From sequence record MN018232.1: DNA of 64,000 nt. One strand, 5' to 3'. The translations under genes were made by a program, and so were the position numbers. This document shows, one piece after another, positions 443 to 48,270 of this stretch. The notes under the pieces were generated by a model, which was given only the letters and a program-made list of their open reading frames with translations, ran no database searches and was not told where the DNA came from. Each line of letters starts with the position of its first letter. The stretch's first letter is position 1.

Positions 443-524
443 TGGGTGGTCTTGGATTTGAACCAAGGTAGGCAGAGCCAATGGATTTACAGTCCATCTC
501 CTTTAACCACTCGGACAACCACCC
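443..524 (-). tRNA. trnY: tRNA-Tyr(GTA)
   Basis: GGGTGGT/ACCACCC acceptor, ATGGA-CT GTA AA-TCCAT, long variable arm, GGTTCAAATCC. Confidence 0.95.
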
Positions 525-527
525 TAA

Positions 528-600
528 CTGACCCACCAGGGCTCGAACCTGGGACAGGCTGATTAACAGTCAGCTGCTCTACCAACTGAGCTATAGGTCA
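528..600 (-). tRNA. trnN: tRNA-Asn(GTT)
   Basis: TGACCTA/TGGGTCA acceptor, GCTGA-CT GTT AA-TCAGC, GGTTCGAGCCC. Confidence 0.95.
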
Positions 601-956: not shown

Positions 957-1149
957 TGGGTGGGTAGAAGGATTACATTATACCTTCAACAGAGGGGTCT
1001 CACTAATGTTAATGATACCTCTGAACTTTCAGGACCCTTGGTATGGGTTCTCATGCCTCCTGTCTCCAGGTCACATGGTGGCCACCACAGCCTTCCTTAC
1101 TATACAATGTTGGGTGCTTGACCACACCAACTTTTCTGTCATACCCTAT
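957..1149 (-). ncRNA. Structured non-coding RNA, manA-motif-like
   Basis: No credible ORF; at least 6 stems (GAAGG/CCTTC, CAGAGG/CCTCTG, ACCC/GGGT, CCTG-GAGA-CAGG, TGGTGGCCACCA, GTTGG/CCAAC). Resemblance to manA RNA is from recall only. Confidence 0.6.
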
Positions 1150-1168
1150 GGAGATGATCAATCTCCAA

Positions 1169-1242
1169 CGACTCAAGTAGGATTCGAACCTACGACCGAC
1201 TGCTTAGAAGGCAGTTGCTCTATCCAGCTGAGCTATTGAGTC
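1169..1242 (-). tRNA. trnR: tRNA-Arg(TCT)
   Basis: GACTCAA/TTGAGTC acceptor, ACTGC-CT TCT AA-GCAGT, GGTTCGAATCC. Confidence 0.95.
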
Positions 1243-1245
1243 AAG

Positions 1246-1280
1246 TGGTAGTTCCTATCGCCTCTAACCCTGAACTACCA
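1246..1280 (-). ncRNA. Stem-loop RNA element at head of tRNA array (possibly abiF-motif-like)
   Basis: Perfect 9-bp stem TGGTAGTTC/GAACTACCA with 17-nt purine-rich loop AGGGTTAGAGGCGATAG; family name from recall. Confidence 0.4.
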
Positions 1281-1295
1281 AGGGGATTACAGCAG

Positions 1296-1688
1296 TCAAC
1301 GGAACTGGTTATTACCTGTTCCAGAGTTCCAACCACCTGGACCTTCATGGAAGTTCTCAGAACCTCCTTGTGTCTCTTTGACAGTGTTCCAGTTCTTAGT
1401 CGCCAATTCATACATCTCTTGATGAATGTTTGGTGACTCGACCTGGTGGGTGGTCTCCCTCTCGACCTTCTTATTATGGTCGATCTCCTTCTGTTTGTCA
1501 AGGGCCTTTTTGGTGAGGACTGGTTTTCCAAACCACGGATCCTCAGGAAGAATGACAGGTGCAGGAACAGACCTGAAGGTTGCAATAGGTTTCTTTACCT
1601 TACTGACAACCTTTTTAATAATACCTTCACTTTTAGGAATAAAGATATTATAGATTGATTTGAGTTTAGTCTTAATCTTCTTAATCAT
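1296..1688 (-). CDS. Hypothetical protein (130 aa)
   Basis: ATGA overlap with upstream gene; basic N-terminus. Confidence 0.75.
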   Translation of the reverse strand: MIKKIKTKLKSIYNIFIPKSEGIIKKVVSKVKKPIATFRSVPAPVILPEDPWFGKPVLTKKALDKQKEIDHNKKVERETTHQVESPNIHQEMYELATKNWNTVKETQGGSENFHEGPGGWNSGTGNNQFR

Positions 1689-45041: not shown

Positions 45042-45125
45042 TTATGGTAGTACAGGTGAGAGAACTGCCCAACTAAAAAGAGAAGATACAGTTCCTAACA
45101 AAAGAGTGGCGGTAGTGAAATTCAT
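45042..45125 (-). CDS. 27-aa hydrophobic micropeptide
   Basis: MNFTTATLLLGTVSSLFSWAVLSPVLP; GGAGG RBS and TATAAT (45153-48) upstream. Confidence 0.65.
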   Translation of the reverse strand: MNFTTATLLLGTVSSLFSWAVLSPVLP

Positions 45126-45224: not shown

Positions 45225-45650
45225 TTAAAGATAATCTTTTCTTTGGTGGTGTTCTGGAATTACTTTGGTAAGTGTAATTGACAGAAGTCCGTCTTCAAAT
45301 ACGACGTTGGAGACCTCAGTGTCGTCAGCGAGGGTCCAGGATCTCTCAAAGTTTCTTTGAGCCAATCCCTTGTGGATAAATGATCCCTCTTCATCAGGTG
45401 ATTCTTTCTCCCCCCTGACAAAAAGTTTTCCATACTCGGTGTAAGCATGTACCTGTTCCTTCTTAAATCCTGCTAGTGCAATTTCTAATCTAGTTTCTGT
45501 GCTATTTACCTGGATTACGTTATATGGAGGGTAATTGTGTACTGAAGTGTTAAAAACTCTTTCAAAATATTCATCCATTCCAATTGAGTTCTTTGCAATT
45601 CGATCCATCAGCTGATCCAAATTGGCAGCATTATACTTTGCTAGTGTCAT
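45225..45650 (-). CDS. hsp20: Small heat shock protein Hsp20
   Basis: YPPYNV, LEIALAGF, HKGLAQRNFER, FEDGLLSI. Confidence 0.93.
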   Translation of the reverse strand: MTLAKYNAANLDQLMDRIAKNSIGMDEYFERVFNTSVHNYPPYNVIQVNSTETRLEIALAGFKKEQVHAYTEYGKLFVRGEKESPDEEGSFIHKGLAQRNFERSWTLADDTEVSNVVFEDGLLSITLTKVIPEHHQRKDYL

Positions 45651-45704
45651 GTGACTTCTCCTTTTAAAGCGAGAGTGTGTTGTGTGGACCCTTACGGCGT
45701 CCAG
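45651..45704 (-). promoter_or_regulatory. ROSE-like RNA thermometer in hsp20 5' leader
   Basis: UCUC-G-CU/UUAAA/AGGAGA hairpin sequestering the SD with a bulged G; upstream hairpin TGGAC...GTCCA; TGTTATAAT at 45718-10. Confidence 0.6.
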
Positions 45705-45724
45705 TACTAATTATAACAGATACG

Positions 45725-45755
45725 AAAAAAAGGAGTGTAGTATAAACCACACTCC
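45725..45755 (-). terminator. Intrinsic terminator after regA
   Basis: GGAGTGT/ACACTCC stem followed by T-run. Confidence 0.75.
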
Positions 45756-45806
45756 CTTATGGGGGTTTCCGATTGTAGAGTGTGCCGCACGAAAGACACG
45801 TATTAT

Positions 45807-46244
45807 TTATTCTCCCTCTTCGGTCTTTCCTCTCTTACCAATGTTGTATTTCTGTTCCAGAGTCCAGTCTTGTTTATCTTTGTAAGACAGAACTTTGATC
45901 TGATTCAATGGTGCGATATCAATAATTGAATCTTCATTGAGGATAGTAATGAGTCCCCAATCAGAAAGAAGCTTAGTAATACGATTCCTACGCTGAACAT
46001 CATTAATAGTAAGGTTAGCGTATTTCCCATCTAGGGCAAACAGTTCCTTAAAGTGAACAATGTAATACTTACCTTGCTTATGAAGGATATGACAAGACTG
46101 ATACAGCTTCTTTTCTTTCCTAGAAGCAACACCAATACGAGTCAGAGTCTCTCTTACTTTGAGAAAGTCATCAGGTTCATTCAACCTGATCTCAACCATT
46201 TTTTCTTGAGACCAAGTTACCTGAGGTTCAGCAGTTTGGGTCAT
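45807..46244 (-). CDS. regA: Translational repressor RegA
   Basis: DDFLKVRETLTRIGVASRK, SCHILHKQGKYYIVHFKELF. Confidence 0.95.
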   Translation of the reverse strand: MTQTAEPQVTWSQEKMVEIRLNEPDDFLKVRETLTRIGVASRKEKKLYQSCHILHKQGKYYIVHFKELFALDGKYANLTINDVQRRNRITKLLSDWGLITILNEDSIIDIAPLNQIKVLSYKDKQDWTLEQKYNIGKRGKTEEGE

Positions 46245-47326: not shown

Positions 47327-48270
47327 TTGAAGTTACACTCCACCATGATTTCAGTTAGACAAGCCAACATATTTATTTCTTGATCCGCGACGAAAGAACT
47401 TTGATACTGATACTTAGCAATAATGAGAACAGCAGCAGCGATCCCACTACCATCCAACTTTGAATATATTGCGTCGTAAACACTACGAAGAAGAACGTGA
47501 GGGTCATTATCAAGATTATCCACGACCCACTTCCTGACCTTTGGAAAATCTTTGTCCTTAAGGCTTTTGAATAAATCATCGGTTTTTACGTTACTAAAGG
47601 CAGCAAGGATACCAGAGTCAATCTTACCACTGACAGAGTATCGTTGGAGTTCATTAAGAACTCGTCTCCAATCAGGGAAGTGTTTCTGGATTAATTCGAC
47701 AAGAACTTTCGGATCATATTCCACACTCTCTGTCTCAAGAATAGTCCTGAGACGCTGGAAGAACTTGGCTGCGAGTTCTTGTCGTTCTTTTCCTTTGATA
47801 GAGAAATCGACAACGGCGCACCTGGAGTGGAGCGGTTCAATAATTTTGTTCTTGTAGTTACAGGTGAAGATGAATCGACAGTTACCAATAAACTCCTCAG
47901 TAAATGCCCGTAGGCAGAGTTGTACATCTGGGGTCGTGTTATCTGCCTCATCAATGATGATGACTTTGTGTTTTGCAGTTGATGAAAGTGAGACGGTCGA
48001 AGCGAAATTCTTCGCATTGTTTCTGACCGTATCGAGAAAACGTCCCTCATCGGATCCGTTGATGACATAATAATCTACTCCAAGTTCATGACAAAGTGCT
48101 TTGGCCACCGTGGTTTTACCACAACCAGGAGGACCAGATAGAAGAAGGTTTGGAACCTCACCTTTCTCTACAAATTTTTGAAATGTATTCTTAATCCCAT
48201 CAGGAAGAATACAGTCCTCAATAGTCTGGGGTCGGTAAGATTCAACCCAGACAAATTCATTACGACTCAT
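47323..48270 (-). CDS. gp44: Clamp loader large subunit
   Basis: WVESYRP, GPPGCGKTT, IIDEAD, SRC. Confidence 0.96.
   Translation of the reverse strand: MSRNEFVWVESYRPQTIEDCILPDGIKNTFQKFVEKGEVPNLLLSGPPGCGKTTVAKALCHELGVDYYVINGSDEGRFLDTVRNNAKNFASTVSLSSTAKHKVIIIDEADNTTPDVQLCLRAFTEEFIGNCRFIFTCNYKNKIIEPLHSRCAVVDFSIKGKERQELAAKFFQRLRTILETESVEYDPKVLVELIQKHFPDWRRVLNELQRYSVSGKIDSGILAAFSNVKTDDLFKSLKDKDFPKVRKWVVDNLDNDPHVLLRSVYDAIYSKLDGSGIAAAVLIIAKYQYQSSFVADQEINMLACLTEIMVECNFK

Follow-up and report, generated by a model that had tools for sequence, protein, structure and literature searches.

A ROSE-like two-hairpin leader upstream of hsp20 in a T4-like cyanophage and in phages of several unrelated hosts

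Does the short leader that precedes a small heat-shock gene in a cyanophage belong to the ROSE family of RNA thermometers, and, if so, where did the phage obtain it? The question arises from a 64,000-nt stretch of sequence record MN018232.1, referred to here as the window, in which a sequence-only reading had described a ROSE-type architecture ahead of hsp20. The window belongs to a T4-like cyanomyovirus, and its hsp20 region is 100% identical to that of Synechococcus phages S-B05, S-B43, and RB11-B. The product of hsp20 belongs to the Hsp20/alpha-crystallin proteins (Pfam PF00011, E = 3e-13), carries a YPPYN motif, and shows 32% identity to IbpA and to IbpB. hsp20 is among the 25 genes common to all T4-like cyanophages (PMC3037559), and cyanophage small heat-shock proteins (sHSPs) have been grouped beside bacterial class A, apart from the host sHSPs, with lateral transfer proposed (PMC3827213). 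Features of the locus are collected in Table 1; the terminator-like hairpin behind regA sets that gene apart from the hsp20 unit.

Table 1. Positions of the hsp20 gene, its leader elements, and its upstream neighbour in the window
Feature	Position	Strand	Detail or basis
hsp20 CDS, 141 aa, IbpA-like class A small heat-shock protein	45225..45650	minus	start codon 45650-45648
SD-containing arm AAGGAGA of hairpin II	45663-45657	minus	SD AGGAG 45662-45658
Anti-SD UCUC-G-CUU of hairpin II	45674-45667	minus	G45670 bulged; RNAfold
Hairpin II, presumed sensor: UCUC-G-CUU, loop UAA, AAGGAGA	45657..45674	minus	fold, conservation
CA-rich spacer (CACAACACAC), single-stranded	45675..45684	minus	conserved among cyanophages
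Hairpin I, UGGAC-G-CC / GUAA / GG-GUCCA	45685..45703	minus	bulged G45698; minimum-energy fold and covariation
Promoter-like TG-T-TATAAT	45718-45710	minus	sequence; 7 nt before hairpin I
Same promoter-like element, alternative reading TATAATTA	45708..45718	minus	ends 5 nt before hairpin I
Terminator-like hairpin, 13-pair stem, loop 4, then T-run	45729..45758	minus	downstream of regA
regA, gene upstream of hsp20	45807-46244	minus	

The minimum-energy and centroid structures computed with RNAfold consist of exactly the two hairpins (-15.7 kcal/mol, z = -2.0), a stability equalled by 6 of 200 shuffled sequences. Hairpin II is built from four outer pairs (U45674-A45657, C45673-G45658, U45672-A45659, and C45671-G45660) and three pairs on the loop side of the bulged G (C45669-G45661, U45668-A45662, and U45667-A45663). 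UCGCU (45672-45668) is paired with AGGA in the minimum-energy fold, the hsp20 AUG is unpaired, and the SD lies 7 nt before it. The pairing of UCGCU with the SD around a bulged G at this distance from the AUG, and the additional hairpin on the 5' side, had all been proposed beforehand, and RNAfold shows the coordinates and pairings to be correct. Hairpin II is a weak structure (-4.0 kcal/mol at 37 C, -5.6 at 25 C, and -7.3 at 15 C) because the helix is short and has U-A pairs on its loop side where Pseudomonas has a G-C clamp. Since it contributes only -4 to -7 kcal/mol, the repression predicted from it may be weak.

The extended -10 element previously noted ahead of the leader is present as sequence, but relatives carry TATAAATA-like late-promoter motifs at that position. 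Read as TATAATTA, the element of the window differs at a single position from TATAAATA, the T4-type late motif and T4 late consensus (as cited in PMC3037559). Relatives hold TATAAT, TTAAATA, or TATAAATA there, in most cases 5 nt from hairpin I. The hsp20 transcript probably starts at about 45703, at the base of hairpin I, and this hairpin probably forms the 5' end of the mRNA. The metatranscriptome contigs that mapped here were short pieces only, one of 236 nt lying inside the hsp20 CDS and none crossing the leader. With phage timing in place of the bacterial sigma-32 layer, the RNA would be the only stress-responsive layer at this gene.

Taken by itself in one genome, the motif does not exceed chance. 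U(U/C)GCU-N2-9-AGGA, without further context, was found six times in the 64-kb window against 5.1 expected, and twice against 1.0 expected when an AUG was required behind it. It is the strict association of the leader with hsp20, together with its conservation, that takes it beyond chance. A covariance model of the leader identifies a single copy in the window at 92 bits; the next best match, at 47680-47752, scores 14 bits (E = 0.73) and was rejected as noise. SD-like motifs precede 26 of the 70 called genes of the window, a strong AGGAG SD is rare, and by predicted SD occlusion hsp20 comes fifth among the 26 SD-bearing genes. These figures bear on a reading in which the inherited leader now provides only a good ribosome binding site and a protective 5' hairpin, giving constant translation and half-life with no sensing. 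In its favour, few genes here have any SD-like motif, SD occlusion at hsp20 is unexceptional in the window, and hairpin II is weak. Moreover, 5'-terminal hairpins stabilise mRNAs, a role that has been suggested for hairpin I of Pseudomonas (PMC3669281).

Conservation across phages was assessed on 80 viral contigs chosen by Hsp20 protein similarity alone (62-96% identity). The leader model matched at all 78 of the protein-selected hsp20 loci with enough upstream sequence, and the element also occurs in the isolates S-PM2, Syn19, Syn1, P-SSM3, ACG-2014f, and S-RIM2, at 35-43% protein identity. Conservation in other phage hsp20 leaders, which the sequence-only reading had put forward as a check on its proposal, thus extends over 78/78 loci and to diverged isolates. 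When the leader pattern was searched for in IMG/VR, 120 of 120 matches were located before hsp20, 116 of them confirmed and 4 truncated by contig ends. Between the most diverged pairs, identity is 0.57 over leader positions -54 to -1 and 0.46 over the CDS, falling to approximately 0.3 in the 60 nt further upstream of the leader. In conservation the leader is on a par with the CDS.

Hairpin I covaries, with three pairs changed on both sides and a score that was reached by none of 500 shuffles. Its stem takes the forms GGAC/GUCC, GGAU/AUCC, GGUU/GACC, GUAC/GUAC, GAAC/GUUC, and GAUC/GAUC, and its loops in relatives are the stable tetraloops GUAA, UUCG, and GAAA; the window has GGACGCC...GGGUCC and most relatives GGAUGCC...GGGUCC. 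Hairpin II is far more uniform among cyanomyoviruses, whose leaders keep CUYGCU and AGGAG with a sole change of C to U that retains a G-U pair; the only motif variants found are UCGCU and UUGCU. U is the other letter allowed by the ROSE motif U(U/C)GCU. Because CUCGCU and AGGAG are otherwise invariant in cyanomyoviruses, hairpin II shows little covariation within them, and the sample was therefore widened, again by protein only, to relatives of the sHSP genes from cyanophage S-TIM5, pelagiphage HTVC103P, and OM43 phage Melnitz. The 145 distinct phage leaders obtained represent phages that infect cyanobacteria, SAR11, OM43, rhizobia, and Pseudomonas. Hairpin II counts were made with an anchor-based script, used alongside a model-based leader alignment; a MAFFT alignment misaligns the SD where loop length varies.

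A hairpin II in the ROSE register, defined as a bulged G between four pairs and three pairs, the five core pairs all being present, is present in 135 of the 145 distinct phage leaders (93%) as against 9% of shuffles. Across these 135 leaders the pair next to the bulge is C-G in 76 and U-G in 59, the following pair is U-A in 131 and A-U in 4, and the one after that is C-G in 103, A-U in 26, and U-G in 6; the loop-side pair is U-A in 126 and A-U in 7. Compensatory versions of the hairpin are found in S-TIM5 (CCAC-G-CUU/AAGGUGG) and in the HTVC103P group (AAUC-G-CUU/AAGGAU), and both fold in this way. Since the anti-SD changes along with the SD and the bulged G stays, selection acts on an imperfect SD helix. 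A leader serving merely as a ribosome binding site with a protective hairpin would have no need of an anti-SD; CUYGCU and its bulged G are nevertheless found in 93% of the 145 distinct phage leaders and co-change with the SD (AGGUGG/CCACGCU; AGGAU/AUCGCU). We rejected that reading for failing to explain a covarying, imperfect anti-SD, and regard it as improbable. In the AGGAGC class, to which the commoner cyanophage leaders belong, the pairing of lowest predicted energy is GCUUU/GGAGC, which leaves no G bulged. We argue that the ROSE register is the selected one in this class also, because the CUC to the left is invariant.

The same conserved letters could in principle be a DNA site or protein operator unrelated to ROSE, namely a Pho box for host PhoB or an operator for RegA. 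In a study from 2024, ATTCAAACTCGCTTAAATA ahead of S-PM2d hsp20 was given as a putative Pho box (PMC10976474), and this sequence corresponds to the anti-SD plus loop of hairpin II. However, PhoB did not bind the S-PM2d fragment and the gene was unresponsive to low phosphate, which refutes the Pho box for PhoB in that phage (PMC10976474). Read as a Pho box, the stretch should moreover have TCG as a spacer between conserved half-sites; in these leaders CUCGCU does not vary, but the loop 'half-site' does. RegA comes into consideration because regA is directly upstream of hsp20 in the window, but the leader is the same in Syn19, Syn1, P-SSM3, and S-RIM2, where hsp20 is not beside regA, and leaders of the same type occur in bacteria lacking RegA. 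The RegA operator was rejected on these grounds, and an origin of the conservation in either kind of site is very improbable.

The relationship of the phage leader to the described ROSE families was examined with Rfam models. Searches with 1.2 kb and with 101 nt gave no Rfam ROSE match to the window leader at E <= 10, and the gathering scores of ROSE_3 (RF02523), ROSE_2 (RF01832), and ROSE (RF00435) were not reached by the window. As positive controls, the E. coli ibpA leader scored 100 bits with ROSE_2, and Pseudomonadaceae leaders and a P. aeruginosa-type leader scored 61-69 bits with ROSE_3. Kyanoviridae phages come near the ROSE_3 threshold of 43 bits (Melnitz 34.1, C48C1 26.8). The ROSE_3 consensus, ugCGgGAUGCCGAA..CGGGUCcCG...ACUcGCuGA...UCaGgAG...AUGAcU, is strikingly near the phage consensus, uGGauGCCuUaaGGguCCaCACAAcACAAuCUCGCUuuaAaAGGAG...AUGACu. 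The missing Rfam match is a matter of narrow curated models and not of unrelatedness.

A phage-derived pattern, GGATGCC-N4-7-GGGTCC-N9-14-CTCGCT, limited to features that precede the SD in the phage leader, was used to scan 185,579 bacterial and archaeal genomes and gave at least 120 matches. Among the 120 listed, 38 are directly upstream of IbpA-like genes and carry an SD and start codon at the right distance. These 38 listed matches come from Pseudomonas, Stutzerimonas, Azotobacter, and Azomonas, and from Acetobacteraceae, sphingomonads, Rhodospirillales, and Burkholderiales, the taxon counts representing a sample of matches. With 61-68 bits against a threshold of 43, all seven of the Pseudomonadaceae matches tested count as ROSE_3. 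Those from alpha- and beta-proteobacteria do not, which marks the Rfam ROSE_3 model as narrow. The phage model in turn matches Sinorhizobium phage Phosso at 42.9 bits, a Burkholderiales metagenome-assembled genome at 38.1 bits, Pseudomonas phage Callisto at 23.2 bits, and Pseudomonas leaders at 16-23 bits, although the scores at bacterial loci arise partly by construction because these loci were pre-selected by the shared pattern. The listed matches gave no sign of the element in cyanobacterial hosts, the two that come from cyanobacteria having no sHSP gene behind them. The leader is genuinely related to the ROSE thermometers of bacteria and present in almost every phage hsp20 copy, and joint acquisition of gene and leader would be the simplest reading.

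The closest parallel is the ROSE_3 element of Pseudomonas ibpA (Krajewski et al. 2013, PMC3669281), the two-hairpin design of which matches the leader in the window and the sequence core of which is common to both, in accord with the ROSE-type architecture originally proposed. Both are 5' UTRs of about 55-62 nt preceding an IbpA-type gene. In both, hairpin I contains GGAUGCC ... GGGUCC with one G bulged, a single-stranded spacer comes next, and hairpin II sets U(U/C)GCU against AGGA(G) around a bulged G; each has a C-G pair at the base of the core (C45673-G45658 in the phage) and an unpaired AUG. The phage version is the smaller, hairpin I having 7 pairs instead of 11 and hairpin II 7 instead of 9, and its loop side has two U-A pairs in place of the G-C clamp. 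Its spacer is CA-rich and conserved, its promoter is of phage type instead of sigma-32, and its hosts live at about 10-28 C instead of 25-42 C. In Pseudomonas, hairpin I is stable and blind to temperature, and hairpin II melts between 25 and 42 C, allowing the 30S subunit to bind, for a 3-8 fold induction over this range (PMC3669281). Hairpin II alone suffices, deletion of the bulged G locks the element off, and opening of the loop-side G-C pair in P. putida abolishes repression (PMC3669281).

Resemblance extends to other members of the family. The core of E. coli ibpA (ROSE_2, RF01832), CUCGCU-GAUUUC-AGGAGCUA, is also that of the commoner cyanophage class, ACUCGCU-UUUAA-AGGAGCUA, and the E. 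coli ibpB leader, ACUCGCUU-CUUAG-AAGGAGAA, matches the class of the window and likewise contains a hairpin resembling hairpin I, bulged G included. Unlike the phage leader, E. coli ibpA has three hairpins, a longer UTR, and a sigma-32 promoter, and the ROSE_2 model gave no score for the phage leader. In the 3'-proximal hairpin of the founding member, ROSE1 of Bradyrhizobium japonicum hspA (RF00435), U(U/C)GCU likewise faces the SD and a G is bulged (PMC3669281). ROSE1 differs from the phage leader in having four hairpins, and no match was found at the sequence level. The last hairpin of ROSE1 is long and takes in the AUG. The contention that U(U/C)GCU opposite the SD of small heat-shock genes is a ROSE signature agrees with this literature (PMC3669281).

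The host phylum has an SD-occluding thermometer of its own on a small heat-shock gene, hsp17 of Synechocystis PCC 6803 (PMC3669281). That element is a single short hairpin without U(U/C)GCU. hsp17 encodes a cyanobacterial-type sHSP whereas the phage sHSP is of class A (PMC3827213). The phage element was thus not borrowed from the host, given the differences in hairpin design and sHSP class. The cIII mRNA of phage lambda is unrelated to the phage leader in both sequence and mechanism and is not on a heat-shock gene. Its translation responds to temperature through alternative structure, with two alternative global folds and more translation at lower temperature.

Based on these relationships, we consider it fairly likely that the leader is a short, two-hairpin, phage-borne ROSE-like translational thermometer, inherited with its IbpA-class gene from a proteobacterial source. 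The transcript would begin at the base of the stable hairpin I, which would not itself sense temperature but would aid folding and probably shield the 5' end. The anti-SD CUCGCUU would pair with AAGGAG, the bulged G keeping the short helix weak, such that the ribosome binding site would be hidden at low temperature. Upon warming, the helix would open and the 30S subunit bind, giving more Hsp20 from the same amount of mRNA. The switch point would lie at lower, marine temperatures than in Pseudomonas, because the phage helix is shorter and more A-U rich than the Pseudomonas helix. We infer thermosensing from the validated relatives, and by the same analogy the SD helix would melt within the physiological range and so affect translation.

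An RNAfold temperature scan had been put forward as a check on temperature sensing. In such a scan the SD is predicted to be mostly paired from 10 to 50 C, and its pairing declines smoothly, with no switch. Nearest-neighbour scans of this kind are not decisive, for they place the validated E. coli ibpA element, at an SD-opening cost of just 1.4 kcal/mol, below the phage leader. Freeing GGAG is calculated to cost 5.4-6.4 kcal/mol in phage leaders at 20 C, similar to the cost in three Pseudomonadaceae ROSE_3 leaders at 25-30 C. This similarity would fit a switch displaced about 10 degrees downward, a comparison on which we do not lean in view of the 1.4 kcal/mol of E. coli. Since temperature swings in the open ocean are small, a pure thermometer is less obviously useful there than in soil or enteric bacteria.

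It is possible that the leader is mainly an operator for Hsp20 itself, free oligomers of which would bind their own 5' UTR and block translation until drawn away by unfolded host or late capsid proteins, whereupon translation would resume and the leader would act as a damage reporter. In E. coli, Cedecea, and Vibrio, the ibpA 5' UTR mediates translational autorepression by IbpA, which in E. coli lasts until aggregates titrate IbpA (PMC10474464). IbpA needs Arg93 to bind RNA but not to act as a chaperone, and Tyr34, Arg97, and Lys98 have a part in autorepression as well (PMC10474464). The equivalents of Arg93 and Tyr34 are retained in 151 of 151 phage proteins and that of Arg97 in 146 of 151, but the equivalent of Lys98 is Ala or Ser in phages. 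Retention of Arg93 is suggestive only, because an arginine is conserved at this position in alpha-crystallin domains generally, including those of unrelated sHSPs and of human proteins. Conservation of the leader also exceeds what pairing needs, in CUCGCU, in the CA-rich spacer, and in the bulged G of hairpin I, and a protein that reads the RNA would more readily account for the very high conservation of the spacer and of bases left unpaired. A damage sensor would, in addition, be more obviously useful than a thermometer in a thermally stable ocean. Autorepression by phage Hsp20 is a serious and live alternative, although as the main function of the leader we hold it to be possible rather than probable. 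It is compatible with thermosensing, both operating in E. coli, and may be an alternative or a second layer.

A broader proposal, which we advance tentatively and regard as rather doubtful, is that ROSE-like leaders are a general feature of phage sHSP genes, comprising those of T4-like and S-TIM5-like cyanophages, pelagiphages, and OM43, rhizobial, and Pseudomonas jumbo phages, and that they are chiefly feedback sensors titrated by misfolded proteins, temperature shifting the set point. If true, these phages would encode a proteostasis sensor operating at the level of translation, and sea-surface temperature or host stress could be linked to the yield of a core cyanophage gene.

The sequence-only reading had been unaware of any such element in a cyanophage, and the literature searched on cyanophages or phages together with RNA thermometers or ROSE contained no description of one. 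The leader is not mentioned in the study that classified cyanophage sHSPs (PMC3827213) or in the biochemical papers on the S-ShM2 protein, and a 2024 review treats viral RNAs that respond like thermometers as speculation. That the leader is a new, virus-borne branch of the ROSE family, widespread among phage sHSP genes, is well supported by its architecture and homology. The S-PM2d sequence once read as a Pho box, and negative in a binding test, is now explained by the leader element.

The ROSE family of alpha- and gamma-proteobacteria thereby gains members in viruses that infect several unrelated hosts, and the case is one of a regulatory leader that moved with its gene in lateral transfer. 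The shorter, A-U-rich sensor helices of the phage leaders would be natural cool-water variants for the study and engineering of thermometers. By analogy with its bacterial relatives, the phage probably adjusts chaperone production to temperature or protein damage, and this offers a concrete and cheap hypothesis for how abundant marine viruses may tune a chaperone to either condition without a transcription factor.

We infer that promoter modules have been exchanged ahead of hsp20 and the RNA element retained, because the leader is the same in the cyanophage contigs that lack the TATAAT/TATAAATA-like motif. This motif precedes hairpin I and is absent in a subset of the contigs. In its place, some carry a G5...C5 hairpin and then TTTGACGCCAA, which directly adjoins hairpin I, and others carry GTTGTTAATGCGTGATCCACAAAC. 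The coordinates of these and the other features are listed in the table.

Features of the hsp20 region in the window and of related loci
Feature	Record	Position	Strand	Remark
27-codon ORF, MNFTTATLLLGTVSSLFSWAVLSPVLP	window	45042-45125	-	just downstream of hsp20
Strong intrinsic-terminator-like hairpin	window	45729-45758	-	between regA and hsp20
Counterpart of window 45657-45680	S-PM2 (L201)	520-545		homologous stretch
Variant promoter region	L017, L020, L025-L045, L050, L053	about 20-75 nt upstream of hsp20 AUG		cyanophage contigs
Variant promoter region, further contigs	L006, L070, L153, L175
sHSP gene with ROSE-like leader, then clpS	Callisto (L208)	999-1301		Pseudomonas jumbo phage; clpS, Clp protease adaptor

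A near-identical 45-nt copy of the regA-hsp20 intergenic stretch (query positions 12-57, 91% identity) was found in S-WAM2 and in S-H9-1, at unrelated places without an annotated feature. It is as if the stretch were a mobile terminator module. On the 3' side of hsp20, the 27-codon ORF, which falls below the length limit of the ORF list, has a motif resembling TATATAAT and a strong SD, GGAGGA, ahead of its start; its predicted product is very hydrophobic, as in small membrane peptides.

What was published for S-PM2d hsp20 as a "putative Pho box" is, in the ROSE-like hairpin, the anti-SD together with the loop. The PhoB gel shift, published as negative, fits the reading of this stretch as such a hairpin.

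Hairpin I of the window (45685-45703, minus strand) and its relatives has a bulged G of its own, where A(U/C)-G-CC pairs with GG-(G/A)U, an arrangement resembling the U(C/U)-G-CU / AG-GA of the SD hairpin. Pseudomonas ROSE_3 thermometers share both the bulged G in hairpin I and this echo of the SD hairpin, and the same hairpin I arrangement is present in the E. coli ibpB leader, the Kyanoviridae phages Melnitz and C48C1, and pelagiphages. Given this similarity, a single protein might recognize both bulged helices.

Some loci in phage records do not look like genes of the phages but like host DNA that is part of the assemblies. The "UNVERIFIED" records A18a (L209, MG065686.1, Campylobacter phage) and A11a (H143) include an ibpA/ibpB locus whose proteins are 100% identical to those of E. 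coli. The record of Pseudomonas phage Y7 (L338, OQ572409.1) has an ibpA of the P. aeruginosa type, and its leader scores as ROSE_3 at 69 bits. In Callisto, the position of clpS after an sHSP gene with a ROSE-like leader suggests that the two genes form a small phage proteostasis module.
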